The position numbers and the translations under genes are program-made. A stretch of 64,000 nucleotides of DNA from Macrostomum lignano (taxonomy: Eukaryota). Location of the stretch: the NCBI GenBank assembly GCA_002269645.1, contig NIVC01002721.1:82577-146576 (forward strand), written 5' to 3'. Below, one piece after another: positions 1,158 through 42,291 of the stretch; positions within the stretch are counted from its first letter, which is position 1, and every line of letters starts with the position of its first letter. The notes under the pieces are model-generated. The model saw nothing but the letters and a program-made list of their open reading frames with translations. It did no database searches and was not told the origin of the DNA.

Positions 1158-5171
<4,014 letters not shown>

Positions 5172-14190: not shown

Positions 14191-14344
14191 AATCCCTATC
14201 CTTCAAATCCCCATCCTGCAAATCCCCATCCTGCAAATCTCCTTCCTGCGGATCCCCATCCTGCAGATCTCTATTGTGCAGATTCAGGAAGAACCTGTTT
14301 CTCAGTTCACGGGACTGTCAGTACTGGAGGCGGAAATGGGATAG

Positions 14345-17070: not shown

Positions 17071-17129
17071 CGGACTGCTGCATCTGAGTCTCCATTTACC
17101 AATTAAAGTTGTTTTTTGTTAATAATAAT

Positions 17130-19944: not shown

Positions 19945-20660
19945 CCGTCTGCAGATCCCCATTAACCCATCTGCAGATCCCCATCATTCCATCTGCAGAT
20001 CCCCACCATTCGATCTGCAGATCCCCACCATTCCATCTGCAGATCCCCACCAACCCATCTGCAGATCCCACAAACCCATCTGCAGATCCCCATTAACCCA
20101 TCTGCAGATCCCCACCAACCCATCTGCAGATCCCCATTAACCCATCTGCAGATCCCCATCATTCCATCTGCAGATCCCACCATTCGATCTGCAGATCCCC
20201 ACCATTCCATCTGCAGATCCCCATTAACCCATCTGCAGATCCCCACCATTCCATCTGCAGATCCCATTAACCCATCTGCAGATCCCCACCAACCCATCTG
20301 CAGATCCCTACTAACCCATCTGCAGATCCCCACCATTCCATCTGCAGATCCCCATTAACCCATCTGCAGATCCCCACCATTCCATCTGCAGATCCCCACC
20401 ATCCCATCTGCAGATCCCCACCATCCCATCTGCAGATCCCCACCATCCCATCTGCAGATCCCCACCATCCCATCTGCAGATCCCCACCATCCCATCTGCA
20501 GATCCCCACCATCACATCTGCAGATCCCCACCATCCCATCTGCAGATCCCCACCATCCCATCTGCAGATCCCCACCATCCCATCTGCAGATCCCCACCAT
20601 CCCATCTGCAGATCCCCACCATCCTATCTTCAGATCCCCACCATCCCGTCTGCAAATCCC
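19945..20660. repeat. Minisatellite, 22-bp unit GCAGATCCCCACCATCCCATCT
   Basis: About 32 tandem copies; source of the spurious (GICRWDGGDLQMGWWGSADGMV)n ORFs. Confidence 0.95.
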
Positions 20661-21147
20661 CAATTCCCCGACAAGGACAACTGAAGTTACGTTATTTAAG
20701 TTGTCCTTGTTCCCCGACCCCATCCCATTCCATTTTTTATGAAAAAACCTACATAGTGACTGAAATAGTTTATAAACGCATATACCCATGACTACTAATA
20801 TAGTTAGTGAATATGTAATTATGTAAACTAATTTATATTGTCATTAAGTTGACTTTAAAAGCATTACGATCTGATTTAGATATGATGCTCCCTCCTTTTT
20901 GACCACCTGGTAATTAAAAGCATTACTTTATTGCTTATAGTTCACATATTTAATGGGTATGCATAAATTTTGTACTTTTTCAAGCAGCAATCCAAATATT
21001 ATCATTCCTACGATAATTTCCAGAGAAAATGGCTGCTGCAGCTTCCGAATCGTGTGAAACTGAACTCCATGATCAAATTAAAAAACTGCGTAATTGGCTG
21101 CGGCAGTCAGAAGATGTTCGTGAACACCCTCCTCCGGGGCATATACA

Positions 21148-21858
21148 ATGTACCCATTTTCGGATTTGGATTGGGATATGACTTCTGTCGATTGGTTGGA
21201 AGCAATTTTGGAATTAGAAAGAGAAGGTTACTACACTTATGATTCCTACCAATGGGTTGACGTGTCAAAAATATACCACTTCAATGATAAAAACCGAAAA
21301 GTAAAACCAGATCCAGCAAGGCGAGTATGGAAGCCTGACAGTTTCCAATACTTAAAAAAGCAGGTTGATGAACAGAAAGAAATCTCGCCTGTTTTACTAT
21401 CTCCTTCTGATGAGCATCCGGGACAGTATGATCTAACTGATGGAATCCATAGGATTGCTGCCGTTCACCATCACGGATATACATCCATTTTAGCTCGGGT
21501 GACAAACATTCGATCTCCGGATAGAACAAAAATGCCACCGCTGTTGACTGACCACTATCCATTTTGGCTCAATTACTCACACGTGTGCTCAGTGGCGGGT
21601 ACGATTGGTAGTGAAATTCAGAGTTTTAATAACTCCACATTTCTAGCAAATGAAACAGAAGTAACTGTTAATGTGTGCAGTCTTTCCTGCGCTAATAAGT
21701 TTCAAATTGAGTCGGCTCAAGCTGCGGATAATTATAACTCGTGGAAAGCCAAAAACATTAAAGGCTCCTTTGAGACGTGCAAAGGGTCTACCGGTGAATT
21801 CAGCTGTGATTCTATTGAAGAAGCGGCTAAGTTTCTGGCAGGCAAAATGTGCAAATAA
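21148..21858 (+). CDS. Intronless ParB/Sulfiredoxin (ParB/Srx)-fold protein; true start possibly 21029
   Basis: ISPVLL...GQYDLTDGIHRIAAV...GYTSILARV matches the ParB N-terminal PxxV...YxxxDGxHRxxA...GxxxIxAxV pattern (GxxRxxA). An upstream ORF from ATG 21029 is one nt out of frame across a GGGG run (21136-21139). Confidence 0.7.
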   Translation: MYPFSDLDWDMTSVDWLEAILELEREGYYTYDSYQWVDVSKIYHFNDKNRKVKPDPARRVWKPDSFQYLKKQVDEQKEISPVLLSPSDEHPGQYDLTDGIHRIAAVHHHGYTSILARVTNIRSPDRTKMPPLLTDHYPFWLNYSHVCSVAGTIGSEIQSFNNSTFLANETEVTVNVCSLSCANKFQIESAQAADNYNSWKAKNIKGSFETCKGSTGEFSCDSIEEAAKFLAGKMCK

Positions 21859-22499
21859 AGTTTAACTTTAAAACTGCGTAAAAGGTTGTGTAGCAGGTGT
21901 AGCTGTGCTTAGTGTTCAATGTTCTATGTTAATGTTGTAGCAGGTATGATTTTACTTATTTGTTCTGTCTGTCTCTAAGCTATGACTCTTTCTTGGAAAA
22001 TTCCTAAGTTCACTCGATTTCTTAGAAATCTCGTGGTAGCTGTGAGTGTCTGAGCGGTAAGACACTGTCTAATTTCCTAAACTAGTTCGAAAGTATTGTA
22101 TTGTAAAGTATTGTAATACTTTATTGAAAGTATTAAAAGTAACTCTAAAATGTAGTGTTCTTCGTTTGTTAGTTATTCTTCTGGCGTCACTGAGAAGCTT
22201 CTTGATACTCGTATTGGAAGTCCATAAGGCTCTCTCATTTTAACTGTTTAACTGTATCTATACCCATGCTACGCTTTGCAAACTTTTTTACTCCTAACGT
22301 AGTAAAAGATAAAAATTAAAGCAACGATCAGCGCTTAGCTATTCACTCAGTCTAAGTATCACAATAATAACGTACATGTACGTGTGATAATTAAAGTTCA
22401 ATTGCGATTTGCAGGATGCATATTGCAATCCCCGTGCAAAATTTAAAAAAAAACTTTCGAGCAATACACTTTCAAGAAAATATCCCTACCAAAATTGCT

Positions 22500-23443
22500 A
22501 CAACAAAACAACAACAACAACAAGAAAATACAGTCACAGTTAGAGCAGGGCGCGTCAGTCGATGGCGCGCCGCAGAGCCTGGGAGCGAACAAAGTCAGCT
22601 CCGTTGGCAGTGTCGGGCGCCCCAGCGTCGCACAGCAGGCAGTCCACGTATCGACGGGTTCGGGCCTGACCCCGCCTGAACGGACCCTGCAAGGTAAGCA
22701 GCAGGACGTCCTGAACAGGTTGGGGGCAGTAGCCCTCGGCCCGGATCACGTGACCCGCCAGTTGAGGTCGCCGCCGGCGCAAAATGATGGACGGGCGCTG
22801 CAGCTTGGCCCGATCGTACAGGACCTCGATCCCGACGCTCTCGTCAGCTGGAAAGCCGCACGGAGCAGCCCTGAGTGCGCCGAGTCCAGCTGCCGCTCAA
22901 GCGTAGCCGTCAGCGTCCACGTCTCGGCGTTGTAGAGCAGGACGGTTTCGACCCCCGCCTGCCACAGCCGAGCCCTCTGGCGGTCGGGCAGCGCTTCGGA
23001 CTGGGGGACGGCTCGGATCGAACGAAAGGCCGCCCAGGCAAGTCCTCTGCGCCGCCGGAGGTCCTCTTCCACGTGGGGCACCAGACCGCCGAGGTAGGTG
23101 AACCGCTGGCAGCGTGCGAGCCTGGTCGTCTGCCCGTCTGCGCCGCGGCACGTCAGGTCCGCTGGGAATGTCGGCCGGCACAGTCAGCACCTCGGTCTTC
23201 AGCGTGTTGACGATCAGACCGACGCTCGATGCCACCTCGACCAGCCTGTCGATCTGGCGCTGGGCGCCTTCAACGGACGAGGACAGGAGGGCGAGGTCGT
23301 CGGCGTAGCCAAGCACGCTTAGGCGCTTTTCGCCGTGGCGGTGACCGATGCGTCTGCGCAGCAGGAAGCCGTCATCAGCCGAGGGGAGAGCGGTCCGAAG
23401 CACCCAGTCCAGAAGCAGCACGAAGAGGAACGGCGCTAGCGTG
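22500..23443 (-). mobile_element. 5'-truncated RTE-clade non-LTR retrotransposon fragment (RT C-terminal part, frameshifted)
   Basis: LAPFLFVLLLDWVLR...LGYADDLALL...GLIVNTLKTEVL and VETVLLYNAETWTL motifs; short (GTT)n tract at the 3' end. Confidence 0.85.
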
Positions 23444-23736
23444 TTCTGTTCTGAAATTGCTACAAAAAGGCAATTCAATATTCATATTCAACACGAAGCT
23501 TCTAAAAATTTGAGAAACAATTCGCTTGCAAGAATCGCGAGATTTTCGTGGTGTCCAATTGCAATTCTTGGTAATTGGTTGTCACAAATTATGATGAAAC
23601 CTTTTTTAAAGCTTATAAGTTATGATCATGCTTTATAATATATATTGAACTCGTTTTCATTACATTATATATTATCATTTATGGTAAATGTCAAAAAATT
23701 GCGCCAATATGTTGCATGTACACTACAATGAAGAGT

Positions 23737-24306
23737 CTAACAAATGCCTCCAAGACTCAACGACAGCTCATATTCCATCCCGCCGCCACTGTTCAAGTGC
23801 CTGCCCAGCTGTAGAGGATGGTTAATCTCAGTTATCTGTCGCGGCCACTCAGTCTTGACAATCCTGATGGAGCTGTCCGCAATTACTCGTCGTGGCGGCA
23901 GCTCGTCGAACTCCATGGTTCTCTCGCCAGCTTTGAGACAGTTAATCAAGCCGCCAAGTTCTTTGTCCGTCTGTATGTGGCCTATCCGTGTGCCGTTGTC
24001 GATGATAAACATCAATTCGCCGATGTACAACTGGACAGTAATGCGACTATACTCTGTAGCTGCGATGGTGACTTTATGAATAGTTAGCCACCACCATTCG
24101 ATGTTGTCTGGGCACAGAAAGTCAGCAACTGCTACAGCTGGAAGTAATTGAAGACAGCCCAGCAACACCAGCAATGAACACGAGCTGCACAATGCAAGCT
24201 GCACGATTTTAGTAGGCTGAAATGTTGTCATTGTTATATATTGGTCCATAAATATATATTTGAATTCTGCCCACAAAATCAGCACCTAAAACCCTATACT
24301 TACCAT
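23737..24306 (-). CDS. Small secreted protein, family member A (exon 1 ends in ATG 24306-24304; exon 2 24216-23737; ~160 aa)
   Basis: ATG|GTAAGT...CATTTCAG|CCT gives M-PTKIVQLALCSSCSLLVLLGCLQLLPAVAVA (signal-peptide-like), then CPDNIEWW...LQLG-x17-GGIC*. Confidence 0.75.
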
Positions 24307-24600
24307 ATCAAACGGCAAAGCTTTGAAGTGGCAATGGAAAACTTGCGTCTATGAAGAAAAATTCATTTTAATTTTACGCTCTAGTATAATATTATATGTA
24401 TGTGCTGATAAGTGAAGTGGTATACACTAGAGCGATGTCAAATTCAAAAATAAAATTTGTTTAAGCGATTGTCTATCTATGGCTTTTGTACATTGCATCG
24501 AATGTACTTTTCATCTATGCGTCTAAAAATAGCGAATGAACCTACCTTGACCACTAAAGTTCCACTGAAAGTCTTGTTGTAAAAAGTTATCTCGAAAAAA

Positions 24601-26539
24601 GGGGATGTCAACTCAAGCACCAGAATGGAGCCCGAAGTTTAGCTCCAGACCAAACCGACTGCAATCGATAACTTCTCGGCCCAGATGACTAGAATCGCCG
24701 AGACATCCCATCCGGGTCTCTTCCTTGGGGTCCCAGGGGATAAAGGGGATAAAATGGGGATCTCATGTCAACTTAAGGCTCTAGAATGGAGCCCAAAGCA
24801 AGGCTCTAGACCAAACCGACTGGAATCAGCAGATTAGACATTGTTATCGAGAACTCAATGGCAAAGTACAATCGGGCACATCCAGGTTTTGAATCATTGA
24901 AACAGCTGCCACCGTCATGGACAGGGCTATCGTTGTTCGAATTCCGTTAGAATTTCATGCGCTGAGTGTTCTTGTCCAACGAACTGGACGAAATTGAGCA
25001 GCTGCACTTCAACGGCGATCTGACGCGAGGGCTAACTAACTCCTCTGCTAACACAAGGGCATGGATTTCCGTCAATCCGCTGGTCCAAGGGCATGGAGAT
25101 CCAAAAAGCTGGGGGTTCCCCCGAATTCACACAGAGAATTTGACAGAGGTTTCGGTGGGTCCGTATCAACTAAATCAAGCCGATGATTACATTCAAAACA
25201 TTCGTGCCAAAAAGGTTCTCGGTAGCTATACGAAGGTGACTCCTGAAGAGACTTTCAGTCGCTCACATCCGAACATCTGAGCCACCTGAAGTGTTGGAAG
25301 TTTCGGCAAGAGTCGTCCCAGTCAGAAAACTGAAACAACCTATTCGGTCGGTGGCATCCGTCTTGGATTTTTCTAGCTGTCGTTTTCTCGCGCCATAATT
25401 CGAAATCTTACCACGTGATTCTTAGAGTGTGTGACAGCAGCGGACAATCGCTTTGGTTTTAGAGATCCAGGATTGCAACTTCCTCATGGCTACTATTCGT
25501 CTGCAAAAGCTGGAAATACGACTGCAGGCTGCGATTGTCATGTAATGGCAGTGCTCAAACTCCTGGGCTGCTACGCTTAACCACCAAGATAGCTATCGAA
25601 GGTCTGGTGCTAGCCTTCGCTTTGTTGATTCCGCTCTTCCACGCAACGCAGGCTTGTTGCCAGAATTTATACCAGAGAAAATGCTTTACCACAGCAGCGA
25701 AAGCCTACTGAGCAACAGTCTAGCAGACAGCATGAGGAGTTTCAGTCAGCCAGCAGCAGCTCACGATCCAAGCCTCAGCCTTCAAGACTCTTTGGTCTTC
25801 AAAACCATGGTCAGCAGTGCTATACGCAATTGTTGTTGCACAACTGTTTCACTGCATCAGCAGCGAAGTCCAACTCCTTCAGCCGGTCAGAGGTAGAGCC
25901 GTGAACACCGCAATGACCAACCTGATGACATCTATGGCGACTGGACCAGCAAGCGTAGATCAACTTGTCAAAGCTATCCGAAGCCGATATCCGCAGCCGT
26001 TGTCGCCAAGACAGCAACACTCCATGAACGAGGTGCTACAGTGCATTCTGTCAGAGTTGCAGCTGCAGCGTCATTGCCTAATCGAATTTACACTAACTGT
26101 ACGTGCGGTAGTTGCCTGATTAGCACGGAGGAGCTGCTCATAGGAGTTCTGGATAATTGTATCCTCAGAATCTCCTTGCAGGAGTTTTCAACCACACTGT
26201 TAACTCTATACTGTCTCTACGCTGCTTTTACGTCACCAAAGCACGTCCCATGCACCAACACCAACTATGCAGCTGATAGTGCGCTGGAAGTTCAAGTCTC
26301 TAACGGCAGAGTGACCCTGATGCAGAGTGTCCGGAGCTGAACTTCGGGCTCCATTCGAGAGCCTTAAGTTGACATGAGATCCCCATTTTATCCCCTTTAT
26401 TCCCTGGGACCCCAAGGAAGGGACCCGGATGGGACGTCTCGGCGATTCTAGTCGTCTGGGCCGACAAGTTATCGATTGCAGTCGGTTTGGTCCGGAGCTG
26501 AACTTCAGGCTCCATTCTGGTGCTTAAGTTGACATCCCA
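24601..26539. mobile_element. Defective DNA transposon with ~220-bp TIRs; transposase remnants on + strand (PHIS/ISL2EU/Spy-like assignment tentative)
   Basis: 24601-24830 is the reverse complement of 26326-26539. Internal fragments GFPRIHTENLTEVSVGPYQLNQADDYI and GYYSSAKAGNTTAGCDCHVMAVLKLLGCY resemble the C-terminal SWIM-like region of DDE_4-type transposases. Flanks are AAAAAA | TTTTT with no TSD. Confidence 0.75.
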
Positions 26540-26681
26540 TTTTTCTTGTTCTCTCTTCTTTTAAAGTCGTTTCGAAAGAAACAGAAAGCAAATATAATCA
26601 GTTTATGTTAGACTTCAACTTAGTTCGCAACACAGCTTATAAAACAAAAATTTAGAAGCAAAAAAGCAAAGTCTCGAAGGA

Positions 26682-28115
26682 CTAGGATTCCGTGTAAATG
26701 CGTAGAAGAAATTCCAATCGCTTGCCATTCAGCGGCGATTCAGTCTGTGGCACCACCGTGTAATCACCTGGCGGCAGGGACACGCGGAACACTACCGAGC
26801 GCTGGTTGTCTTCGGGGTGTTGAGCCACCTGGTACACGGGTCGCCTCAGACAGTTAGCCCCTTTATAGATGTCAACAGCTTTGACAGAGAATCGTCGCTT
26901 TTCTAGCGGAATGTTGCGCTGCCCCGGCTCTTCCAGACTGATCACAACGGTGGCAACTCCGTCCTGATTGCTTCCATCGCAAAAATTCGTCAGGAACGTG
27001 TTGTCCTCGAAGAATTCGTCAATTTTTTGACCTGGATACCACTCTCCGTAGATGTACTTGCCGTTCCACTCGGCTCCCGTCACGCCGTTGTCCAAATTTC
27101 TAGCCAAATGCAAAACTGTCAGGAACTCGAAGAACTTCATAAAGTCGGACAGCTCCATCCAGTTCTCACCGTCGTCCTGCTTCACTAATCCAGCTAGCTT
27201 CATCTGCTCGGGAGTCCACCTGGGATCATTGTCGTTCCATTTGCCGCGCCATTCAAATTCGCTTAGCGGCCCCCAGGGATTGCAAATCCGGATCAGATCC
27301 ACCAGTTTGCCATTGTGCGGGATCTGCACTGTGCCTGTGACGATGTATTCGTGACCGGACGTCAATCCAAGGCTCTCGAGGTTTTCGCCCAGAATTTCGG
27401 TGTGGGTAGCCGCACCAGCGGACAGTTTTTTTGATAGGCAATACTTAATGTTCTCCAGCACCTTTGCCCCGTCCTCCCGCTTGAATGGGATCAACTCGCA
27501 CACTCCACCGGTGAGGTCGGCCATGGCCTCCAGCTCGAGCCCGCCAATTAGAGACTCATAGCATCCGTGCAGCTTAGCTAGCGCCTTCTCCAACAGGCAG
27601 ACCCAGTACTCGCCCTCGTGCGCCGCGGCGTACACAAGCTGGCCGTCCTTGGTCGGCAGCCGATCGTCCACCATGATCTCCACTTCGCGTCCAAATGGTC
27701 GGAAGCGGAACCGGAAGGCGCCGCAGTAACCTGCACCGCTCAGTGTCTGGTCAGGAAGGATGACCTGGGACAGTAGGTCCGGTCTCTGCGTGATGGCAGC
27801 AACAGCAGCCAAGATCCAGCAGTTCTCCAGTTCGCCTTGATTTATATCAAATCGAGAGAAACCATCTTTGACGAACTCCGGGTCAGCGTCGAGTTCTTTA
27901 GGTCGCAGCCACTTGTAATTGAGCTTCTTGTGAGCATAAGTTAGAGAAGTGTCGTCGGCAGGAAATTCCGGATCTTCAAACAGCCTTTTGCTAGCTCGAA
28001 GCTCCCGGATTATCTCATTGTTCTTTTCAACGTTCAGAGTTATAAAATTAGTGGTCGACACTCGAAATTGAGAGCAGCTTGCAGTAGAAGGTCTCCAAAA
28101 CGCCTCTTGCTGCAT
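26682..28115 (-). CDS. Intronless calpain-family cysteine protease (CysPc + domain III, no penta-EF-hand), triad intact, ~477 aa
   Basis: FEDPEFP, WLRPKEL, DINQGELENCW (Cys), VDDRLP, CLLEKALAKLHGCYESL, GHEY (His), ICNPWG (Asn), WMELSDF; ends after the C2-like domain (PGDYTVVP...EFLLRIYTES). Confidence 0.9.
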   Translation of the reverse strand: MQQEAFWRPSTASCSQFRVSTTNFITLNVEKNNEIIRELRASKRLFEDPEFPADDTSLTYAHKKLNYKWLRPKELDADPEFVKDGFSRFDINQGELENCWILAAVAAITQRPDLLSQVILPDQTLSGAGYCGAFRFRFRPFGREVEIMVDDRLPTKDGQLVYAAAHEGEYWVCLLEKALAKLHGCYESLIGGLELEAMADLTGGVCELIPFKREDGAKVLENIKYCLSKKLSAGAATHTEILGENLESLGLTSGHEYIVTGTVQIPHNGKLVDLIRICNPWGPLSEFEWRGKWNDNDPRWTPEQMKLAGLVKQDDGENWMELSDFMKFFEFLTVLHLARNLDNGVTGAEWNGKYIYGEWYPGQKIDEFFEDNTFLTNFCDGSNQDGVATVVISLEEPGQRNIPLEKRRFSVKAVDIYKGANCLRRPVYQVAQHPEDNQRSVVFRVSLPPGDYTVVPQTESPLNGKRLEFLLRIYTES

Positions 28116-28729
28116 GACGTTTGCGAGCAAACTACTAATAAAATCTGTACAAAGATTAGAAAAAGAGAAGATTATCTCTATTCTCTTTTGAATCAGGGCT
28201 GGGTCTTCTTGAACCCGAGTTCCAACTTATTTGCACATTAAATGGGCAAAAAATATATTTTTCACTGGGCAACCGTATAGTCTATGGAAAAAGTCAATCA
28301 ATGCTATGCAGTAGAACACACGTCTGAACCATTTTAAAAATAGCAAAAAACACAAAATATGAACATAAAATAAACGCAGAGCAAATCAAGTTTAGATGGT
28401 GTGAATTGATCACATCCCAGATTAATGCGAGTATAGATTTATTGATATTGAAGAATACACCAGGTACAATAGTACGACCTACATTGTATAATTGGCTACA
28501 TTGTATAATTTACCAGCTACGAGTATATCTGTTACTGGATAAATTAGCTCTAATGTTAAAGGGCAACTTTATATTTTAACTTTTGCAATAACCTTTGCAA
28601 TGCACAGACTGTGGAGACTGTGACAAAAAACGCAGTTTCGAAAAACCTGCCTAACAAACGAAACCGATTTTGATTCTACGAAGTTAGATTGAACGATTTA
28701 AACAAAAGGCGTGCATATAGTCGTGTATA

Positions 28730-30940
28730 AACAATATGTATTAGGACGCAAAGGGAAGGCCCCTAGCGCGCACGCGCTCGCAGAACAGCTAGGTGGGAGG
28801 GGCAGGCAGCAGCAGCCTGAGGGATCAGCTCAAGCGCCTGCAGGTCAGCGATGAGGCAGTCCTAAAGGCAGTGGCCCAGCAGCATCTGACGGCGACGGCG
28901 CAGGGTATCTCTCAGGGACTTCTAGCGCGGGCCATCAGAGCGTTGGTCGGCAGGCGCTTCGGGTCCAGGGCTGGCTTTCGCAACTCGGTCAACGGCACAG
29001 CCTCCATGCCGTACAGGAGGATCGGCTCGACGGCCGCGCGGAACAGGCGCACCTTCAGGTCGTCTCCGGCAGCTGAATTGAAGACGTTCCTGAGGAGGTG
29101 CGCGGCGCGCCATAGCCTGATTTCTTCTGTAGGAGACAATCGCATTGGGATTCATTACCAGGGCGCCGAGATACCGCGGAAGTCCTCGCACACCTCGATG
29201 CGGTCTCCATTGGGCAGCTTAAGGGTTGGGACGGTATTCATGCCCACGTGCAGCGCCTCCGTCTTGTGAGCAATTACCAGCAGCCCAACACGGGCGCCCT
29301 CGTCGCAGAGCCTTGTGAGAGCTCGCTGGGCAGCAGCTGGAACGCGGCAGAGCAGTGCGATACGCGAGAGAGGGAAGCGAAACAGCAGGGTGTCTGGAGC
29401 TTCGGCGCGTGGACCCAGCAAGTAGCTGTCATCCTCGCGGAGGGCCCGACGAAGCACGTAGTGCATAACCACGGGGAAGAGCAGAGTAGCCAGCGTGTCG
29501 CCCTGAAGGACGCCTGCATGGGCTGGTGCCGAATTCTTCTGTGAGGCCATCGCTCGACATGACAAAAGCCCTGGAGTCGTGGTAGAGGTCCATCACCACG
29601 CTCACCTCGCTCACCACCGCAGCATGTACGCCATAATGAGATAGAAGCCACGCCTGGACACCGAGTCAAAGGCCTTGCGATCTAAGCGCCATCTGAGCGC
29701 CTGGGACACCCTCCTTTGCCGGAAAAGACAGGCGGTTTCACTTCATCTGCGTCTATGCTCCAACGGCTCCCCGGACCAGCGAAGATCCATCCGTGACAGA
29801 AGCCCTTTAGGACACTCTGGGCTGCATGCTTGATTCCATCCCTGCTCGTGACGATCTATCATTGTTGCTGGTGACTTCAACTCGCCATCCAGTTTTATCC
29901 AGGCCAGAGATCTGATGGCTGTCAATGGCACCATGCGACAGCGCTTCAGCAAGCTTCCAACTTTATTTGGCCCCAACGGGCGAACCACTCGGCTGGACTG
30001 GATTTTCTGCCCCGAGGTCCAGGGTGAGCAGAGTCCTCAACATCCGCCCCGACTGCGTTCAATCTGATCACCGCCTGATGGCATGCGACTTCGATCTGCA
30101 CTGGCAGAGACTCCCGTCTGCGCCACCTCACCCGCTCTGGGCCGACCTGAGACACCCGGACACGCGGCAGGCCTTCCTACTGCTTGCCACTACTCCTGCT
30201 CTAGCGCAGTCCTTCGAGTCTTTCCATCACGCCGTCGAGGATGCTGCAGCGCTTCTCCCACGGAGGCAGGCAAACCCTCCAAAGGCCCTGTGGGACCGCA
30301 ATCGCATCATCTCCCAGGCAAGGCGGCATGTGCAGAGCACTGCTGCACTCCACGGCCGTGACAGCAACCAGGCCAGTGCTGCCAGGGACGAGCTGCAGTG
30401 CATCTACGCCCAGCGGACTGAAGCCTGCCTGCATCAAAGAAGCTGTGAGCGAAATCCAACTCGCCACTGACAACTGCCGCCATAGTGCTGCCTGGAGAGC
30501 CATCAACCAGCTGACTGGCAGGAAGCCCAGGCCTAACACCATTGTTGGCGCTGATTCCACCGAGCACCGCAAGGCCCTGCTGGCCACCCACTACCGCGAG
30601 GTGCTCAACGCGCCCGCTCCAACTGCGCCTCTTCTGCCGATCCCAGCTACTTCGCTCCAGCTCAGCCAGGCCCTTCAACACCGGCCCCCATCACCGTAGG
30701 CGTAGTTGACCGAGCACTGAGGACCATGCGAGCTGATGCTGCCGCTGGGGTGGACGCCGTCCCTCCCAGGGTCCTGAAGCTGCCCGAGCTCACCCCAATC
30801 TTCACCAACCTGATGAACAAGCACTGCAGCCTTGGAGGCAACGAGGCCGCCTCCTGCCCAGCCTCAACCAGCTGCTGCTGAGCTTCCAAAGCGGCTTCTG
30901 CCCGGACAGGTGGACAGATGAGCAATTCACAGTATTCCTT
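28730..30940. mobile_element. RTE-like LINE copy with inverted 5' part (3' RT half on - strand 28730-29683; endonuclease-to-RT half on + strand ~29685-30940)
   Basis: - strand: RKAFDSV...GVLQGDTLA...LFRAAVEPILLYG. + strand: ICVY...GDFN...PTLFGPNGRTTRLDW...SDHRL...KLPEL...FQSGF...EQ. Both halves align with the uninverted copy at 49.3-52.2 kb. Confidence 0.85.
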
Positions 30941-31144
30941 CATCCATGACCGTAGCTACGAGTATGTACATTTTTATTTTTAGCTTTTGTTTAACACGCG
31001 AACTTCCATATAGTCTTTGATGTAAAGCCAGAATGCCAATGGGAAGCGAAACTTGTTAGTCTTAATTAACGAACCCAAAACTTGTGTTTGAAATCAAGAT
31101 CTTTCATCCCTCGACTTTGTCGTTTTTCGTTAAAAAGACCAATA

Positions 31145-31729
31145 ATGGTAAGCGCTTTTGCTTCAGTGACAAAACTGTATTGATGCCTGTATGTCTTCAT
31201 TCATTGACGCAATCAGTTTCAGTTTCAGGCTCAGCACAAGTTGCTGAAGAGATCAACAATATTTGCTGTCATCGTCATTCATCTATGCTTGATAATTACG
31301 CCATCAAACAAAGCCTTAGGCAGACGAAGAGATCAAGAAGAGTTGACCTACTGCAAAGGCAAAATGCGCTGGTGGGTCATAGTCAGACAGAGGGTGACAC
31401 TGTTCGCTAGCAACTTCGGCGGCGCCAAAGCTTACATGTATTTTAACAGGATTTTGCCTCCCAGTGGCTTACTGCAATGGCACAGTTATGAAATGAGACG
31501 CCATGTTGCTCCAAATATGGGCGCAGATGTGGTGTTCCTGGATAAAAATCACTACATAGTGCCAGCTTATAGCTACTATCGACTGCGTCGAATGGCCAGG
31601 CTTCGTAAAGGCTCATTCAACGAGATCAATGGTCACCTGCTGCTTGGTAGTCACGTTCACATGTACCATTACATGAGGTACGAATACACTACCGTAGACG
31701 GTGGCAGCTGTGGCGACACATTCACTTAG
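31145..31729 (+). CDS. Small secreted protein, family member B (exon 1 ends in ATG 31145-31147; exon 2 31229-31729)
   Basis: No in-frame ATG in the long ORF, but AATAATG|GTAAGC...TTTCAG|GCT supplies it (81-bp intron): MAQHKLLKRSTIFAVIVIHLCLIITPSNKALG-RRR...CKGKMRWW...LLLG-x17-GGSCGDTFT*. Confidence 0.75.
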
Positions 31730-33254
31730 TTCTCTGGAGATTGAAGAGCTCAGACCAGCTCGAACTGTCTAAATTTCTTCTGGGAGTCTTTCTTGAGTGC
31801 GCTTTGAGTTATTCGCAAAAAATACATTTAGTATATGAAAATTCAAAACTTTCAATTTTATTAACTCATTTTTGAGTTTCGATTGTTAATTTTCATTTGA
31901 TATAAAACGGATCAGTTTGGAGACACTTCGATTTTGTAGCTACTAGTTGTGTCAGACTTTTGCTGATATTTGTAGAGATTCATTAAGTGTTACATTTAGT
32001 ACTTATAATCTTATTATAGAAATAAGACCCCGTTTATGTCTTAGTCGAACGTTTTTTTAAGATTCTCTGTAAATTCAAAGCAGAAATTCCAGCCTCTAAT
32101 TGCAGTTGCCATCTCAATGCGGCGAACGCAAGGACTACTCTAAGTAACATAGGACTCGAAATCTATAGTAAATGTTTTGAAGGCAACTTCGCCAAAAAAT
32201 ACACTGCAGAGATAGGAGGTTTTAATTTTTTCAGCACAAACATTTTTATTGCTTTTGAAAGGAGGCAGATCCAGTGTTCATCTTTTGATATGTTGTGCCT
32301 TTCTTATTGCTCTATCGATATTCATAAAGCTTTTCGTTCAGAAATAGTTTTAAAGGCAGGTTTCACCGAAAAAATACACTACGGAGATAAGAAATTTCAC
32401 GATTTTCAACACTAAACCAGAGATTGGGTCTCTTAACAGTGTCAGAGAAAGTTCTAATCACACTATTTTGTGCCCCACATGCTGCTCTAACTACGGATTA
32501 ATCGATTTTTCTTGTTTAATAGGTCTTGTCATTATTTTAAACGTTTTTTTCAAGTGAATTAGATTTATAATTACTTGCTTAACATGTTGCAGATTGTACT
32601 TTTTGTTCGAGAAAATCATTTTTTTTCTCACAAAGGAGTCGGTATTCTTAATGCTACAGATTCTTACATGTACTGCTTTATTAAATTTGTGCAGGATCGA
32701 GGTCTGCGGTACCCTGACACAAAGCCTTCGGCGAATTCATTCAACAAAAGCACTGAATAAATTTTTGCCCATTCCGCTGACTGCTGAGTACACGATCACA
32801 CGGTGTGTTCAACGGCCCTGACCTTCTAATCGTCAGGAATGTACACTATACTCTCTGTGGAGACTGGCCCTCATTGTTGTAAAAAGCACGACAACCCCCA
32901 GGCGGATGTTGCCCTCCCCAGCATGAACACTTTAAATAAATTATCTTCAGACACTCGTTAGATAAACAATGAAAAAGTAGCATATTTTTCGAGATTTTAA
33001 AATTAGAAACTTGCAAACTAGAATAAAGTACGGGTCTTTCTAAAAAATGCTGTGATGGTCAGAAGTTGTTGCAAGAAACTGAAATAATGTTATAGCAGTG
33101 AGAGCATTCAACTCAAACTATTTGTTTATGGCATTTCCCTACAAGCAAGATGAAGCAATCGGTTGAAGTTATTTGCTTATAGTTAGATCAAATCGGAAGT
33201 TCAAATATTAGGAGACTATTGTCGTCATAATTAATCTTGGTAGCTTTTAGAAAC

Positions 33255-33740
33255 ATGGCACTGCGATCAAGCAGTTTGCTGCGAGTATTGCTGCTGCTCA
33301 GTCAAACATTCAGTTTTGCTTGGCCCACTGACACCTCAGTCAGGCATTGCAGAACGAATTCGCACTGGTTGAGATTTAACCTCATCAGCCTGGAGCTTTG
33401 GCCCGATCCGGCATCAATCTCGGCGCCAAAGGCGAGCCTGACCTATACAACAGTATTCAAATGGAGCAGCCTTGACGACAAGACCTACCTGAAATTGGAA
33501 CACCTCCCACTGCCAGATCCAGCCGAGATCAACGGAGTGTACTATTTTAAGCTGAACCAACGACAATACAGATCGGTCAGAAGAAGTCTCGCCAACTTGA
33601 CTGTCAGTTACAATTCGATGTCTGGGCAGGTGAATCGTTACCTGGAGTTCCCGATCGAAATCGGCAGTCAAAGATTTCAAAATTACTGGATTTCAATTAT
33701 GTACTTTTCGGCATTTGGCGGTGTATGTCCTCTCTGTTAA
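33255..33740 (+). CDS. Small secreted protein, family member C (~161 aa)
   Basis: MALRSSSLLRVLLLLSQTFSFA signal-like; CRTNSHWL...IEIG-x17-GGVCPLC*; TTTTAG acceptor 4 nt before the ATG. Confidence 0.75.
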   Translation: MALRSSSLLRVLLLLSQTFSFAWPTDTSVRHCRTNSHWLRFNLISLELWPDPASISAPKASLTYTTVFKWSSLDDKTYLKLEHLPLPDPAEINGVYYFKLNQRQYRSVRRSLANLTVSYNSMSGQVNRYLEFPIEIGSQRFQNYWISIMYFSAFGGVCPLC

Positions 33741-34059
33741 TTTTTTTGGGTTAATGCGCTCCATCTCGAGTGCTACTTAAAGTATATGACTTCTTTGCTG
33801 CAATCTGTAAACATACAATCGTATAGTCAGATATATTAGATATTTATATATATATATATATATACTCGTATAATGTAACATAATATATATTATGTTACAA
33901 GTCATTTCACCCCTCCGGGTGGCACCAAAATAAATTCACAAAACGTTCATTAAATAAGCTGCCAAGTTCTGAAGAATTTCTAAATAACTTTAGTAGATTA
34001 GCAATGCCCTCATAAAGTTTAGCCATTGTCTTATTTGTCTGAATGCTTGAAATATTGTA

Positions 34060-34252
34060 GCGGGTCGCCATCATAAAGCCGAAATATCATAACTCCGAAA
34101 ACCAAAATAGCGGTTTGCGTTGCTAACGCTGCCGGAGTTATGATTTTTCGGGTTTATGATATTTCAGGTTTATGGTATTTCGGGTTTATGATGGGCGTTG
34201 CTACATGTATATCGGTATTCGAAGTTGTGATTTTTCGGGTTTGTGATGCTCC
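34060..34252. repeat. Short palindromic element (ATCATAA..CCGAAA subrepeats and their reverse complements), probable MITE remnant
   Basis: CATCATAAAGCCGAAATATCATAACTCCG versus CGGAGTTATGATTTTTCGGGTTTATGAT. Confidence 0.45.
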
Positions 34253-34477
34253 CCATTGTGCTAGTTAAAAATCCATTTTGTTACACAGTCAATAAGCAAT
34301 ATTAAGTGAATATTATTGATAACTTTAAACATTTAACTATACCTTTACCAGTTTTGTGATGCCGTATGCAGTTAAGCGCTGCGTTACCCTTAGGTTAGCA
34401 ATAAAGGTTTAGTACAATAGCAGAATCTTCAACAGATAAACAAGACAACAGCACTATAACAAAAGTTCACCAACACT

Positions 34478-34875
34478 TTAGTTCCCCAGCACTTTAGTTC
34501 CCCAGCACTTTAGTTCCCCAGCACTTTAGTTCACCAGCACTTTAGTTCCACAGCAGTTTAGTTCCCCAGCACTTTAGTTCCCCAGCACTTTAGTTCACCA
34601 GCAATTTAGTTCACCAGCACTTTAGTTCACCAGCACTTTAGTTCCCCAGCACTTTAGTTCCCCAGCACTTTAGTTCACCAGCACTTTAGTTCCACAGCAG
34701 TTTAGTTCCCCAGCACTTTAGTTCACCAACACTTTAGTTCACCAGCACTTAGTTCACCAGCACTTTAGTTCACCAGCACTTTACTTCATCCGCACTTTAG
34801 TTCACCAGCACTTTAGTTCACCAGCACTTTAGTTCACCAAGCACTTTAGTTCACCAGCGCTTTAGTTCTCCAGCA
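34478..34875. repeat. Minisatellite, 16-bp unit CACTTTAGTTC[AC]CCAG
   Basis: About 24 tandem copies. Confidence 0.95.
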
Positions 34876-35330
34876 CCGATAAACTGAACTGGCTTTGTTG
34901 AAATTAAGTTCGACATTTCCCTACTTTACTGGAAAACCCATACTTAACGTGTCAAAAGCAAGTAGTGCAAGGAGTGCAAGTAGTGCAAGTCCCAATGCAA
35001 ATCCAGAGTGAAAAAAAAACACTTTTGCCAGCATTTCCACCGGTAGATATTCAACATTTATCCGCGCTTTTTGAGATATTGAGCAACACATGAGGATCTG
35101 ACATGGAGTAGTTCGTATCCAGATTTTAGGAAAATCAATGTCTTTGAACCATGAGCTCTATAGCATTGGGACACTCAGATAAAAAGTATCTGGACTTTTT
35201 ACCATTACGCCATATACTCGTAATGGAGCATTGGGGTGGCAAAGTGCCAAAATTACAAAGAAAAAGTCGAAAGCTACCGTCAATAAAATAGTTTTCATTG
35301 AAACAGTTAGTTATTTACCTGTTAGCGCAG

Positions 35331-36035
35331 TTATTTCAAGCAGATTGGACACAAGCCACCTTTTCTTGTATGGTATGTGTAGGACATATTCTTAATGCTT
35401 ACAGTGTGATAACCAAGAAATATCTTCACTTTCATTCTGACCACTTGACCGGACCAATCAATCAGCGAGATTCGCGCGTAACTGTCCGCCAGAACAAAGA
35501 AAATATTTTTCTTGCCGTTCATAAATGTCCGACCATTGAAAGAGCGCTTTTGTTCCAGACGCATTCGCTGCTTGGTGTAGCGCACCAACGTCAGTGTGGA
35601 GTGACTGTCGTCGTTCTGATTTGAAACTTCATAAAACTCCACGTAAGCTGCATCCGTATAGGAAATTTTGGATTTAACGTAGAGAACATGCGCAACGAGC
35701 ATCCAGTATTCGGTACCATCCTCACAGATCTCGTGCCCCAGAACATAACTAGCCGGCAGCAAGATGGACTGAGATACAATGATTGCCACCAGTATACGGA
35801 GTATTGTGATCATGGGCGACGACATCTGGGTGGATTGGTAAAACAATGGGTGGCTTATTGCCTATGCGCGTGAAGCTTTGAGGTAATGTCAGGCTATTTT
35901 AGTACATCGGCATGCGTTTATTGTCGAGTTTCAGGCTTATGGTAGACTATGGCATGTTGTTGAATCAGTAATACTTGTTAGACTTTGTTCTGAATTTCTA
36001 TTATTCTGCAACAGACAGAAGAGAAAACTTACCAT
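35331..36035 (-). CDS. Small secreted protein, family member D (exon 1 ends in ATG 36035-36033; exon 2 35825-35331)
   Basis: GCGATG|GTAAGT...CACCCAG|ATG TCG; ITILRILVAIIVSQSILLPASYVLG signal-like; CEDGTEYW...IFLG-x17-GGLCPICLK*. Confidence 0.75.
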
Positions 36036-36166
36036 CGCAAACAGCGGCACTGACCCTGGGTGTGTCTAAAAAGCCTAAGCATTGCTGATTCCTTAGCGTT
36101 GGTTTCTTTTAGAAGTTTACCCATAGAACATGTAACTTCAGCGCGTTTTTCCAATCTACTCTAATC

Positions 36167-36384
36167 CATGGATGAATGAATAGAATGGATTGCTATTCTG
36201 GCTCTGGCTATTTTCGTTTTTGACTCTTTTGCATCCGGTTCCCCACCATTTCGGTTTTCCGCCGAAAATTGTCTATGGCAATCATCAACCAATGAAAAGG
36301 CACGGTGGGGAACCGGATGCAAAAGAGTCAAAAACGAAAATAGCCAGAGCCAGAATAGCAATCCATTCTATTCATTCATCCATG
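36167..36384. mobile_element. hAT-type MITE (218 bp) with ~80-bp perfect TIRs
   Basis: CATGGATGAATGAATAGAATGG...CCATTCTATTCATTCATCCATG; exact 8-bp TSD CTCTAATC; explains the mirror-image ORFs at 36161-36390. Confidence 0.9.
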
Positions 36385-36564
36385 CTCTAATCTGCTACAT
36401 GGCAGGTGATTCCTTTAAATTTCAATCAAAAGTCTAATTTAAATTATAATTGAAAATGAAACTATAATTTAACAAAAGGCGAAAACTTTATTTTGTAAAT
36501 GAAGGAACAACTGAGGGAACGTAAAAGCTAGTTGAAATTCAATCCTTGCTAACAATCCCAAGGA

Positions 36565-37950
36565 TCACGTGAACACTCGAAGCAAAAACTCCACCCTGTT
36601 GCCTTCAATCAGGGTCTCAATGCGAGGAATGACAACATAATCGCCAGGTCGCAGACTTGCTCTTGAAACAAATTGTCTTTCCAACTCCGTTCCCGTGAAT
36701 CGCATCAAAGGTTCGCCTTCGGGCAACTTTCCCGGATAAATTTCAATGATTTTCTTGGCGAATTCCGAGCCATCAGGGTACAGATGGCGTCGTTCGCCCT
36801 CTTCCAAACTGATAATGACGTACGCCGACCCATCCGGATTTGCTGACGCACCGGAAACGGTAAAGCTGAAGCGGTCGTCATGATAGAACTCATCCGGACC
36901 CTGGTTCATCGTCCACGCTCCGTAGACCTTCTTGCCAGTCCACTCTGACCCGGTCACGCCGCAGTCTAAATTTCTGGCCAAATGAAGAATTTGAACGGAC
37001 TCAAACATTTGCACGAAATCAGACAACTCAATTGTAGTTTCACCTTCTGTAGCATTGGCTTGCAACTGGTACCAGTCGGATGACAAGCGGGTATATTCTT
37101 GATCTAGCAAAGCTCTTCTATAATCCAAAATCTTCACAACATCGATTGAACTGCCGTCCCGTGGAACCTGAGCAGTGCCGCTAATAATATAATGGCCTCC
37201 TGGCGGCAGGTTGGGCAATTTTTTCATGCATTTTTCAGCGTCATCGCTGCTTTCATTGCGTGCACAGAACGCTTCAACGATCAGTTCCCGTTTTAAAGCT
37301 GACTGCAATATTTTCAGTAAATCGTCCACCTTGATTTCTCTTACATAGATTTCTTCGCAAACTCCACCAGTGAGTAGTGGCAATAGCTCTAACGATGCGC
37401 AAGTTGGTACATCTTCGTATGAGCCGAACAGCTTGGCAAAAGCCTTCTCGAGTAGGCACAGCCAGAACTGGCCACGGTGAGTTCCGGAAAACGCTAGTTC
37501 CCCGTTTATAGTAGGGAGCCGATCGTCAATAGTGAGCTCAAATTCTTGGCCAAATTGGCGAAAGATGAAGCGAACAGAGCCGTCATAGTTCTTGCCGTGC
37601 AGTGTCTGACCCGGTGGAATAACGCTGTGTAAGAGGTCCTGCCGATTTCCGATTTGGGCTAGACATAGTAATAAGCAATAGTTGGCACTTTGACCTCTGA
37701 CGTTCGCGTTGAATCCCGACCCGACGTTAACGTCTCCGACCTCGAACAGTAGTGCTGTGCCATTTCCGGTCATTTCGTGCGGCCTTAGCCAGACTAAAGG
37801 TTTAGAATGGTATCTTCCTGATGTCGAATGGGCCTGATGCTCATCATCCTGTCCGGCATGTACAGAACTGTAATCGGCTGGAAATTCCGGATCTTTAAGC
37901 GGCTTTTCTCCGGGTTTCAGCTTTTTAACCGCTTTGAAAAGTCTCTTCAT
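36565..37950 (-). CDS. Intronless calpain-like protein, predicted catalytically inactive (461 aa)
   Basis: Paralog of 26682-28115 (DPEFP, WLRPHE, IDDRLP, CLLEKAFAKLFGSYE, LHLARNLDCGVTG, EFLLRVFT). The triad positions read RGQSANYC, PGGHY and ILDYRR. AATAAA lies ~75 nt after the stop. Confidence 0.85.
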   Translation of the reverse strand: MKRLFKAVKKLKPGEKPLKDPEFPADYSSVHAGQDDEHQAHSTSGRYHSKPLVWLRPHEMTGNGTALLFEVGDVNVGSGFNANVRGQSANYCLLLCLAQIGNRQDLLHSVIPPGQTLHGKNYDGSVRFIFRQFGQEFELTIDDRLPTINGELAFSGTHRGQFWLCLLEKAFAKLFGSYEDVPTCASLELLPLLTGGVCEEIYVREIKVDDLLKILQSALKRELIVEAFCARNESSDDAEKCMKKLPNLPPGGHYIISGTAQVPRDGSSIDVVKILDYRRALLDQEYTRLSSDWYQLQANATEGETTIELSDFVQMFESVQILHLARNLDCGVTGSEWTGKKVYGAWTMNQGPDEFYHDDRFSFTVSGASANPDGSAYVIISLEEGERRHLYPDGSEFAKKIIEIYPGKLPEGEPLMRFTGTELERQFVSRASLRPGDYVVIPRIETLIEGNRVEFLLRVFT

Positions 37951-39000: not shown

Positions 39001-40259
39001 GTTTTCCCTGACGTTTGCGGGTTCGAGAGCATACCGCTGCTCGCCCGGTACCTCAGGGACACGGGACGAGCTGAGTTCTTCTCCACCGCCGGTGAGGAGG
39101 ACCGCGCGGCAGGTGAAATCGACGGGTCCCCCTGAGAGACATCACTTTGATGGAAAACATTGGTCGCCAGTGGCCAGCGAAATGGGCGGCGCGCCTCCTC
39201 CGCCTAGCGTTGCCCCCTGCAGCTGAGTCAACTCTATTGACGAGTAGATCGACCCATTGACAATAGAATAGAATTGTACACAATCACCCGGGAGAACAGC
39301 TAAACTGACAATTTATCCCAGAATAGCGTCAAAAGAGAAAACGCAGAATGCGGTCTGTTTTCCGAAATTTGCGCATCATACAGCGCATACAGCGTCCCCG
39401 TTTTATCTGTTGCTTTAGCTATTAAAAGCATCGCAGTTTGTAATGCAACAACTGTGTAAAAATACCTACCTTGTACCTAGTTGCATTGGTATAAAATGAA
39501 TAATGAAAAGTTAATGAATAATAATAGCCTAATCGATTCGTTTTGGCCGAAAAATAAGCTTCTTTAAGCTTCGTTGCTTCTCTCTGACCGCTCGCCCTGT
39601 GACTGTATTGTTTTGCTAACTTTCTAACGACGGCAAACCCAAAACAGAAATTATATGCGCAAATCTAAAAAGCAGGCATTCCGTCACGCTAGACGCCTCG
39701 GGTAGCTGCAACACCCACTGAGTTTGTTTATTTCTTCTCAGCAAATTTTGTGGTTTTTGCGAGTCAAAAACGAACAAAAAAGTTTTAAAGACATTTAATT
39801 TAAGCTACTCGACAAGCACTTTGATTTGCAATACTCGCCAAGTTGGAGGTTCCTTGCGATCTTTTCAGCAGCCAAGTTTACAGAAAGTTTAAACCGCATG
39901 CATAAGGAGAGTAATCTTTGCTGCAAGTGAAAGCGACGTGGACTTTTAGCCATTTGTGCTGTTGCGTGCAAGGTGAAGGTGTTAAATTACAACCTTAAAC
40001 AGGTATGCGTTGTACGAGACTGCAAAAATTTCGAGTGTATTTTGTATTCAGGATTCAAATTGTCGTGGGAGCGAATGCAGGTTTAAATTTGCAATGATTT
40101 TGCAAGAACAGAAAGGATGAGAGCGCAAAGTTATTTCCAAACTGGTTCGGTCTTAGCTTAGAGCTACATGTAGGTCGCAACTCTGTCTAACAAAAATGAA
40201 ATATTCTGTCTGAAATACCAGTACTATCTAACAGGTGTCTACCATTCTGCCTAGCCGGT

Positions 40260-41525
40260 GTGTGAGGGATTATCTTGTCTAACAGATGTGTGACACTATC
40301 CTGTCTAACAGATGTGTGACACTATCCTGTCTAACAGGTGTGTGACACTATCCTGTCTAACAGATGTGTGACACTGTCCTGTCTAACAGGTGTGTGACAC
40401 TGTCCTGTCTAACAGGTGTGTGACACTGTCCTGTCTAACAGGTGTGTGACACTATCCTGTCTAACAGGTGTGTGACACTATCCTGTCTAACAGGTGTGTG
40501 ACACTATCCTGTCTAACAGGTGTGTGACACTATCCTGTCTAACAGGTGTGTGACACTATCCTGTCTAACAGGTGTGTGACACTATCCTGTCTAACAGGTG
40601 TGTGACACTGTCCTGTCTAACAGGTGTGTGACACTATCCTGTCTAACAGGTGTGTGACACTATCCTGTCTAACAGGTGTGTGACACTATCCTGTCTAACA
40701 GGTGTGTGACACTATCCTGTCTAACAGGTGTGTGACACTATCCTGTCTAACAGGTGTGTGACACTATCCTGTCTAACAGGTGTGTGACACTATCCTGTCT
40801 AACAGGTGTGTGACACTATCCTGTCTAACAGGTGTGTGACACTATCCTGTCTAACAGGTGTGTGACACTGTCCTGTCTAACAGGTGTGTGACACTATCCT
40901 GTCTAACAGGTGTGTGACACTATCCTGTCTAACAGGTGTGTGACACTATCCTGTCTAACAGGTGTGTGACACTATCCTGTCTAACAGGTGTGTGACACTA
41001 TCCTGTCTAACAGGTGTGTGACACTATCCTGTCTAACAGGTGTGTGACACTATCCTGTCTAACAGGTGTGTGACACTATCCTGTCTAACAGGTGTGTGAC
41101 ACTATCCTGTCTAACAGGTGTGTGACACTATCCTGTCTAACAGGTGTGTGACACTATCCTGTCTAACAGGTGTGTGACACTATCCTGTCTAACAGGTGTG
41201 TGACACTATCCTGTCTAACAGGTGTGTGACACTATCCTGTCTAACAGGTGTGTGACACTATCCTGTCTAACAGGTGTGTGACACTATCCTGTCTAACAGG
41301 TGTGTGACACTATCCTGTCTAACAGGTGTGTGACACTATCCTGTCTAACAGGTGTGTGACACTGTCCTGTCTAACAGTGTGTGACACTATCCTGTCTAAC
41401 AGGTGTGTGACACTATCCTGTCTAACAAGTGTGTGACACTATCCTGTCTAACAGGTGTGTGACACTGTCCTGTCTAACAAGTGTGTGACACTGTCCTGTC
41501 TAACAAGTGTGTGACACTATCCTGT
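40260..41525. repeat. Highly homogeneous minisatellite, 26-bp unit ACACTATCCTGTCTAACAGGTGTGTG
   Basis: About 48 head-to-tail copies without spacers; main variant is A/G at one position. Confidence 0.97.
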
Positions 41526-42291
41526 GAAACAGTCGTGTGTGTGTTGCACTCTATCATGTGTATCACTTATGCACTGTAAAAAAGGTGCGAAAGTTAGACA
41601 CAGTACAAAACACTTAGAAACTGTGAAAATATTCAGAATAAAATTATACGTTAAGTCACTAATTTTTTTGAACTCATTCAGAATTCCCAAACACAGCCGA
41701 GATCTCGGTTCTGAAAAGAGCTGCTCGAATAATGAATGACTCATGCCGGTAAACGCAAGCTTATATGCATACATGTCTACACATGTAAACATGCAGTCAG
41801 AATTGCCGAAAATTCGGGTTTATAAAGACGCGAATTAATGCCAAGCCATGGAAACTTGATCCGTTTCATTCGCAATATTATATATGTGCAGCATTGGCGG
41901 AGTGCTGTGACAGGCTCTGCATGCATGCGGTGTAACTCCGCGGGTGCCAAAAGAAAGTGGTTTTCTCTGACAGTGTTCCCCCGCATGCCTGCTGTTGCTA
42001 CCAGCTTCTGGAGTCATACAATCCAATTATATTATTAGCTTTTTCACCTGTGGTCGAATCGGAGAAGCTCTTGACTAAGCAATTAGGTTAAAAAAGCAAG
42101 CCGGTCGCCCAGGAGTCGAACAGGCTCAGGCCAACACTATAAAGAATGAAATGTTGCCATTTTAGCCCTAGAAATTGCGTAGAATCCTAATTAATAAAAA
42201 ACGCCTACGGCCGCTCTCTTTCTGCCACGAGCAACTTCTCGAAAGTTAGGAAAACTCTGCAGACAAAAAAGCCCAGCGCCTGGACAAAGTT

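Follow-up and report, generated by a model that had tools for sequence, protein, structure and literature searches.

Comparison with Described Systems

Stand-alone, secreted beta-sandwich proteins of about 130 amino acids (aa), in which an N-terminal Cys is paired with a C-terminal Cys, are known from the ML / NPC2 / Der p 2 proteins, and ML domains have further conserved disulfides. Beta-sandwiches are also found in C2 domains, such as those of cPLA2 alpha (PDB 6iej), PLC-delta1, PLC-epsilon and NEDD4L, which occur in the cytosol as modules of larger proteins and have conserved aspartates for Ca2+ binding, and in domain III of calpains (PF01067), which is C2-like and part of a cytosolic protease. 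Here we compare these systems with four small genes, A to D, that lie between positions 23737 and 36035 of a 64,000-nucleotide stretch of DNA from the flatworm Macrostomum lignano (assembly GCA_002269645.1, contig NIVC01002721.1, positions 82,577 to 146,576 of the forward strand; this whole stretch is called the window, and coordinates refer to it). In the explanation that we consider probable, A to D represent an undescribed, locally duplicated family of small secreted, disulfide-tied beta-sandwich proteins, each an extracellular binding module.

The predicted products resemble C2 domains in their size of about 125–130 residues and in an apparently all-beta, antiparallel sandwich, but they would be stand-alone proteins with signal peptides and a terminal Cys pair, and they have no sequence similarity to C2 domains (PF00168). 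Calpain domain III likewise shares a C2-like beta-sandwich with the proposed fold of the family and is encoded beside two of the four genes, whereas it has neither a signal peptide nor the terminal Cys pair. Compared with the ML and NPC2 proteins, the family has only one conserved Cys pair; moreover, none of its five members (A to D and P0124, a relative described below) matched ML in Pfam (E1_DerP2_DerF2, PF02221), and no ML structure was among the top 50 Foldseek matches. Putative seminal-fluid proteins of M. lignano are also small and secreted, and many are without recognisable homologues; the class is defined by prostate-limited expression (PMC5977470).

A Family of Four Divergent Paralogues

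The original prediction, made from the letters alone, had grouped four short open reading frames (ORFs) by a C-x5-[WY] motif and a C-terminal [LI]G-x17-GG-x-C block. Both motifs and all spacings are exact in the four reading frames, including H/Q at +2, M/I at +9, Y/I at +11 and Y/L at +13 of the block, and the two Cys are 124, 119, 126 and 125 residues apart in A, B, C and D, respectively.

The proposal that these proteins form one family is borne out by alignment statistics. When the mature parts were compared by Smith-Waterman alignment with 500 shuffles, z was 11.9 for A-D, 7.6 for C-D, 6.5 for A-B and 5.5 for B-D, with all shuffles exceeded in each case, while A-C and B-C were not significant. 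BLASTP connected A with D (E 2e-8) and C with D (3e-5), and leave-one-out hidden Markov models (HMMs), searched against all ORFs of the window, recovered A (4e-10), B (2e-14) and D (4e-12), with C reaching only E 0.05. Gene D is the similarity hub of the family; paralogue identity is 15–30%, and A and D are the most similar pair at about 23%. Judged by these comparisons, A to D are paralogues and constitute a real family, which probably grew by local duplication, with A and D each just downstream of a calpain paralogue. No further copy was found in the window or in the sister loci on contigs NIVC01001642.1 (L001) and NIVC01004424.1 (L002), which carry copies of the locus.

The family had been called unrecognised, and this description stands. 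A HMMER search with a profile built from the four mature domains, run on 1.84 billion representative proteins, matched A, B and C and, beyond these, P0124 alone (153 aa, E 3.5e-9), which is thus the sole relative found outside M. lignano in that collection and comes from a 1.7-kb Logan contig of run SRR29421764 (L003). In P0124, a signal-like N-terminus is combined with C-x5-WW and with LG-x17-AG-x-C, where H, I, Y and Y fall at the positions noted for A to D. Its gene (L003 979–1440) is a single exon without a start-codon intron, with a coding GC content of 52% between AT-rich flanks of 30–36% GC, and the contig shares no DNA with the window. A second profile search with all five sequences returned nothing new, a scan of metagenome contigs with P0124 gave no relatives, and a single-sequence homology search with D as query gave zero matches. 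In terms of sequence, the family is near-absent elsewhere.

Known families were searched as well. An hmmscan of the five members against Pfam-A at E up to 10 gave no family match, C2 included, and the family profile returned nothing from PDB sequences at the same E limit; profile HMMs thus did not place A to D in any well-known family of these two collections. A match of gene C to CpcD in Pfam (E 0.21) was dismissed as noise.

Gene Structure and the Start-Codon Exon

Genes A, B and C are annotated in GenBank as "hypothetical protein". Gene A (23737–24306, minus strand; BOX15_Mlig004263, 160 aa) consists of a start-codon exon (24304–24306), an 87-nt intron (24217–24303, GTAAGT...CAG) and a main exon that includes the stop (23737–24216). 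Gene B (31145–31729, plus strand; BOX15_Mlig010399, 167 aa) has the same organization, with a start-codon exon at 31145–31147, an 81-nt intron at 31148–31228 (GTAAGC...CAG) and a main exon including the stop at 31229–31729. The most divergent member, gene C (33255–33740, plus strand; BOX15_Mlig022872, 161 aa), is a single exon without an intron and ends in GGVCPLC. Gene D (35331–36035, minus strand) is unannotated; it comprises a putative start-codon exon (36033–36035), a putative 207-nt intron (35826–36032, GTAAGT...CAG) and a main exon including the stop (35331–35825), with an inferred product of 165 aa ending in GGLCPICLK. This model was inferred by analogy, from an identical ATG|GTAAGT junction together with an in-frame acceptor, and the main exon of D itself starts with ATG.

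The reading frames to which the phrase "four short ORFs" referred do exist, but A, B and D as originally delimited contain in-frame stops and are therefore gene spans with an intron inside rather than continuous ORFs. In each of the three, the ATG at the 5' end is directly followed by GTAAG, and an AG acceptor 87, 81 or 207 nt on joins the main ORF in frame, leaving a phase-0 intron between codons 1 and 2 (by the annotated coding sequence in A and B, and putatively in D) that is absent in C. The annotated protein of gene A (P0121, MPTKIVQ...) is exactly Met plus the exon 2 translation, and so is P0126 of gene B, which like the two further annotated gene B proteins, P0122 and P0127, begins MAQHKLLKRS. 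In A and B, no ATG precedes the signal-like region within exon 2, and the main ORF of gene B therefore needs the ATG of the upstream start-codon exon.

The GenBank annotation of GCA_002269645.1 was made from RNA-seq-derived transcripts and TransDecoder (PMC5730564), and because it was built from transcripts, A, B and C are transcribed and spliced as modelled. Transcription, to which the original prediction had looked as a check, is thus found for three of the four genes. The product of gene D has no exact match in a collection of 15 billion proteins or in the gene index, and no gene was called at its place in L001 or L002. The annotation may have filtered out gene D owing to repeat overlap. 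A satellite-like tandem array of 16-bp units in 26 copies lies between C and D (34464–34876). No promoter or upstream similarity was found among the four genes, and poly(A) hexamers within 600 nt downstream, present only for gene C and the two calpains of the window, are uninformative.

Counting both strands, the 64-kb window contains the octamer ATGGTAAG only four times, where about two occurrences would be expected by chance; A, B and D contribute three of these with their start-codon exons, which makes the shared start-codon intron a family character of these three genes. The fourth occurrence (18005–18012, minus strand) has no ORF behind it.

Introns at this position have been described (Nielsen and Wernersson, 2006; PMC1626468) for genes of short, conserved, Lys-rich proteins, mostly ribosomal, that lack a signal peptide. 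Genes A, B and D share with them the phase-0 intron directly after the ATG and differ by their signal-peptide-like N-termini and their poor conservation.

A second parallel is with trans-splicing. The M. lignano spliced leader (SL) ends in ...TTGCATG, and GTAAG follows in the SL RNA gene (PMC8629364); the resulting ...ATG|GTAAG junction is identical to the end of exon 1 in A, B and D. Flatworm SLs can supply their terminal AUG as a start codon (PMC12582326, citing Cheng et al., 2006). A search with the 35-nt SL allowing up to three mismatches found no match in the window, so that exon 1 in these three genes does not represent a copy of the SL, and the annotated A and B transcripts are cis-spliced. 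Since the exon 1 junction equals the SL junction, one may speculate that the exon 2 acceptors might also take the SL, an idea that bears on gene D in particular because it lies within operon distance of a calpain gene (calpain 2, see below). Combining both aspects, the family could illustrate how flatworm genes dependent on an SL-supplied AUG gain an AUG of their own, with an acceptor that takes its Met either from the SL, for example downstream in a calpain-led operon, or from a cis exon, and its proteins could be a novel kind of secreted C2-like sandwich, held by a disulfide staple and serving an extracellular role peculiar to the lineage; we give this combined reading little credence. A start-codon-only exon that copies the SL junction provides a small, testable case of flatworm initiator codons being supplied by splicing.

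Coding Status and Selection

Three copies of the whole locus are present in the assembly (window 17505–36760 versus NIVC01001642.1 and NIVC01004424.1), which fits the neopolyploid genome reported for M. lignano (PMC10733133). Between the window and the two sister contigs, identity is about 95–99% across long aligned blocks and falls to about 85% in a few shorter stretches.

All four ORFs are intact, indel-free and stop-free in both sister copies. By comparison, indels whose lengths are not divisible by three occur in the introns of A and B, the splice sites being conserved, and the non-coding DNA around the genes has many gaps between copies (e.g., 26 gap openings in one 7-kb block). Variable sites among the three genomic copies were counted as non-synonymous and synonymous, giving 5 and 8 for gene A (omega 0.19), 4 and 4 for gene B (0.28), 2 and 2 for gene C (0.29), 4 and 2 for gene D (0.57), and 15 and 16 for the four genes pooled (omega 0.27, binomial P 3.5e-4). 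The adjacent calpain 1 had 0 non-synonymous and 12 synonymous sites (omega 0), and the family is less constrained than this gene (Fisher P 0.003). Taken together, the indel-free ORFs in three copies and the pooled dN/dS of 0.27 identify coding genes under constraint, and the family is under purifying selection that is clearly weaker than on the adjacent housekeeping-type calpain 1.

These data also bear on whether the four are genes at all. If they were chance ORFs in transcribed non-coding DNA or decaying pseudogenes, it would be understandable that D is unannotated, that its few substitutions are mostly non-synonymous, and that no homologues were found in other named species. However, four such ORFs would hardly share significant similarity and conserved splice sites, remain free of indels in three copies whose flanks and introns have many, show a pooled omega of 0.27, and have a homologue with the same motifs (P0124) in an unrelated sample, so that we regard a lack of function as very improbable.

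The idea that the family is diversifying quickly needs to be divided. It is accurate for the paralogues, which are very divergent at 15–30% identity, but the recent copies are under purifying and not positive selection. This distinction matters for the possibility that A to D are reproductive effectors, for example seminal-fluid proteins of the prostate, in which divergence driven by sexual selection would explain the missing homologues. Their small size, secreted appearance, narrow lineage and very divergent paralogues agree with such a role, as does precedent: Macrostomum reproduction-related genes are reported as fast-evolving (PMC7336406), and prostate-limited secreted transcripts are known in M. 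lignano (PMC5977470). However, selection on the recent copies is purifying and not positive, M. lignano has many other secretory cell types, and the identifiers Mlig004263, Mlig010399 and Mlig022872 were not found in the full texts and M. lignano supplements searched. A reproductive role is unlikely in our estimation.

Predicted Secretion, Fold and Disulfide

In all five members a charged or polar n-region and a hydrophobic core are followed by small residues at −3/−1 and then by the first conserved Cys. The hydrophobic 12-mer core within the first 30 residues has a mean Kyte-Doolittle value of 1.75–3.2, and the sites after the core are of the AxA-, ALG-, SFA-, VLG- or VEA-type across the five members. 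In gene A, for instance, the likely signal peptide is MPTKIVQLALCSSCSLLVLLGCLQLLPAVAVA, and the mature part would begin with DFLCPDN. This call is heuristic, with n-, h- and c-region features judged by eye together with hydrophobicity, and it suggests that the proteins are secreted via a cleavable signal peptide, the precursor of about 160–167 aa consisting of this N-terminal peptide and a mature domain of about 125–135 aa.

The domain had been expected to be beta-rich, and an AlphaFold2 model of P0124, predicted with the five-member alignment, agrees with that expectation: it is all-beta with nine strands, at a predicted local distance difference test (pLDDT) score of 77.6 (about 90 in residues 105–128) and a predicted template modelling (pTM) score of 0.72. 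In this model, the conserved C-terminal block forms the last hairpin, with LG starting strand 8 and the Y-E-Y segment in strand 9, and this placement explains the constant 17-residue spacing. The first Cys lies right before strand 1 and the last Cys right after strand 9. The five-member alignment has just five invariant columns (C, S, G, G and C), two of which are these Cys. The flanking positions of these Cys and their invariance make an end-to-end disulfide likely in the modelled fold.

We propose, based on these predictions, that the mature domain is a single antiparallel beta-sandwich of eight or nine strands with a loosely C2-like topology, in which LG-x17-GG-x-C would form the last beta-hairpin and the terminal Cys pair would tie both ends together by a disulfide. 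The sandwich core would have been kept while loops and surfaces diverged freely between paralogues, and the protein would most likely act as an extracellular binding module after release from a secretory cell.

Comparison of the model with the PDB by Foldseek ranked C2 domains first (cPLA2, PLC-delta, PLC-epsilon, NEDD4L and Munc13). The top match was 6iej_A (E 1.7e-3), and the C2 matches had template modelling (TM) scores of 0.38–0.52 and root mean square deviations of about 6 A; Foldseek against viral structures gave nothing meaningful. No conserved Asp/Glu cluster for Ca2+ binding was found among the five aligned members, and for this reason we speak of a C2-like sandwich without assigning the family to C2.

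Alternatively, the C2-like sandwich and aromatic-rich loops might belong to membrane- or lipid-binding effectors in defence or digestion, similar to secreted beta-sandwich toxins. It is plausible to consider this because lipid-binding C2 domains are the best structural matches and because the mature domains are rich in aromatic residues and His (11–22% F+W+Y+H). However, the structural similarity is weak, the acidic Ca2+-binding cluster is not conserved, and sequence searches of Pfam and PDB returned no match to C2, toxin or lectin families. We thus hold such effectors to be quite improbable, and no known toxin, virulence or resistance function is indicated for the family.

Several observations weigh against the explanation that we favor, an undescribed family of secreted, disulfide-tied beta-sandwich proteins. 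First, gene C is weakly tied to the family, as its leave-one-out E of 0.05 indicates; its link is mainly via D, and it is the member without an intron. Membership of gene C is also backed by its length and Cys spacing, which it shares with the others, by its C-terminal block and by its place in the cluster. Second, gene D has no transcript-based model, and taken alone its 4 non-synonymous and 2 synonymous sites are indistinguishable from neutral evolution. Third, when D was used as the query with a four-sequence alignment without P0124, the model had a pLDDT of 43 and was unusable; support for the fold thus comes from a single, moderately confident model, that of a homologue with 15–30% identity. 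Fourth, the Foldseek E values never reach 1e-3 and the TM scores are about 0.5 or lower, so that "C2-like" is a loose term. Finally, A, C and D have a third Cys in addition to the proposed pair.

This analysis assigns three GenBank "hypothetical proteins" and one unannotated gene to a family and supplies them with gene models, a probable fold and evidence of selection. Species-specific traits, for example in gland secretion, reproduction, adhesion or defence, often depend on small secreted protein families of this kind, restricted to a narrow lineage. Transgenesis and RNA interference are established in M. lignano, and the function of the family is therefore directly testable. On present evidence, A to D constitute a well-founded, ordinary orphan gene family in a tractable model flatworm.

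Calpain Neighbours and Origin of the Cluster

Two intronless calpain genes lie close to the family and are treated here as context outside of it. Calpain 1 (26682–28115, minus strand; 477 aa, annotated protein P0001) contains Peptidase_C2 and Calpain_III but no EF-hand domain (Pfam E 6.6e-87), and its closest non-self relatives are Macrostomum lignano proteins. Calpain 2 (36565–37950, minus strand; 461 aa) is also without an EF-hand domain and is 37% identical to calpain 1. When the two are aligned, the catalytic Cys (ENCW) of calpain 1 corresponds to Tyr (ANYC) in calpain 2 and the NPWG Asn motif to DYRR; calpain 2 thus looks like a pseudo-protease in which the catalytic Cys and Asn are apparently substituted.

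Gene A is located downstream of calpain 1 on the same minus strand, and the ATG of gene D is 530 nt downstream of the calpain 2 stop, also on the same strand. In L002, about 1.9 kb (window 24600–26539) is missing between calpain 1 and gene A, which leaves a few hundred bases between the two genes. That A and D are the most similar pair of small genes while the calpains are 37% identical is consistent with an ancient event in which a calpain and its adjacent small gene were duplicated as one unit, with faster divergence of the small genes afterwards.

The same arrangement could suggest that the small genes are detached and diverged copies of calpain domain III that gained a signal peptide later, since A and D each lie just downstream of a same-strand calpain, both calpains contain Calpain_III, and the family model resembles C2 domains. 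However, when the family was compared by hhalign with a 16-sequence domain III alignment, the probability was 0.1% (E 0.47), which comes near to a refutation at the sequence level and led us to reject this derivation. In addition, no calpain structure was among the top 50 Foldseek matches, and no family member was present within 10 kb of a third M. lignano calpain locus. Descent from domain III is hence hardly credible.

Surroundings of the Locus

The window, which is part of a 146.6-kb contig, is eukaryotic in content and includes, besides the two calpain genes, retrotransposon fragments and satellite arrays. Retrotransposon debris is found at 22746–23478, 28800–30950, 49419–51223 and 52961–54254, with reverse-transcriptase (RVT_1) fragments next to gene A, in the interval from calpain 1 to gene B and at 49–51 kb, and with an ORF at 52961–53494 that has an integrase zinc finger of the Ty3/gypsy type. 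Further satellite-like tandem arrays are present at 1–829, 13761–14194, 19948–20662 and 40227–41541, the last consisting of 26-bp units in 50 copies. Long, low-complexity Ser/Pro/Leu-rich ORFs at 1500–5300 (minus strand) run over tandem repeats of 15–37 bp units and are almost certainly not genes. A single tRNA match at 17341–17411 (minus strand; 30.8 bits versus an Rfam gathering score of 29) may be a tRNA-derived repeat.

An F-box ORF at 11244–11759 (plus strand) is followed on the same strand by two paralogous ORFs without a Pfam match, at 12242–13420 (392 aa) and 16080–17087 (335 aa), which together look as if an F-box gene with uncharacterised C-terminal exons had been duplicated in tandem. 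Finally, a 346-aa ORF at 55475–56515 (plus strand), also without a Pfam match, has a signal-like N-terminus (MIALLLLASLLSSPCSASG) and is a further candidate for an orphan secreted protein, not related to the A to D family.

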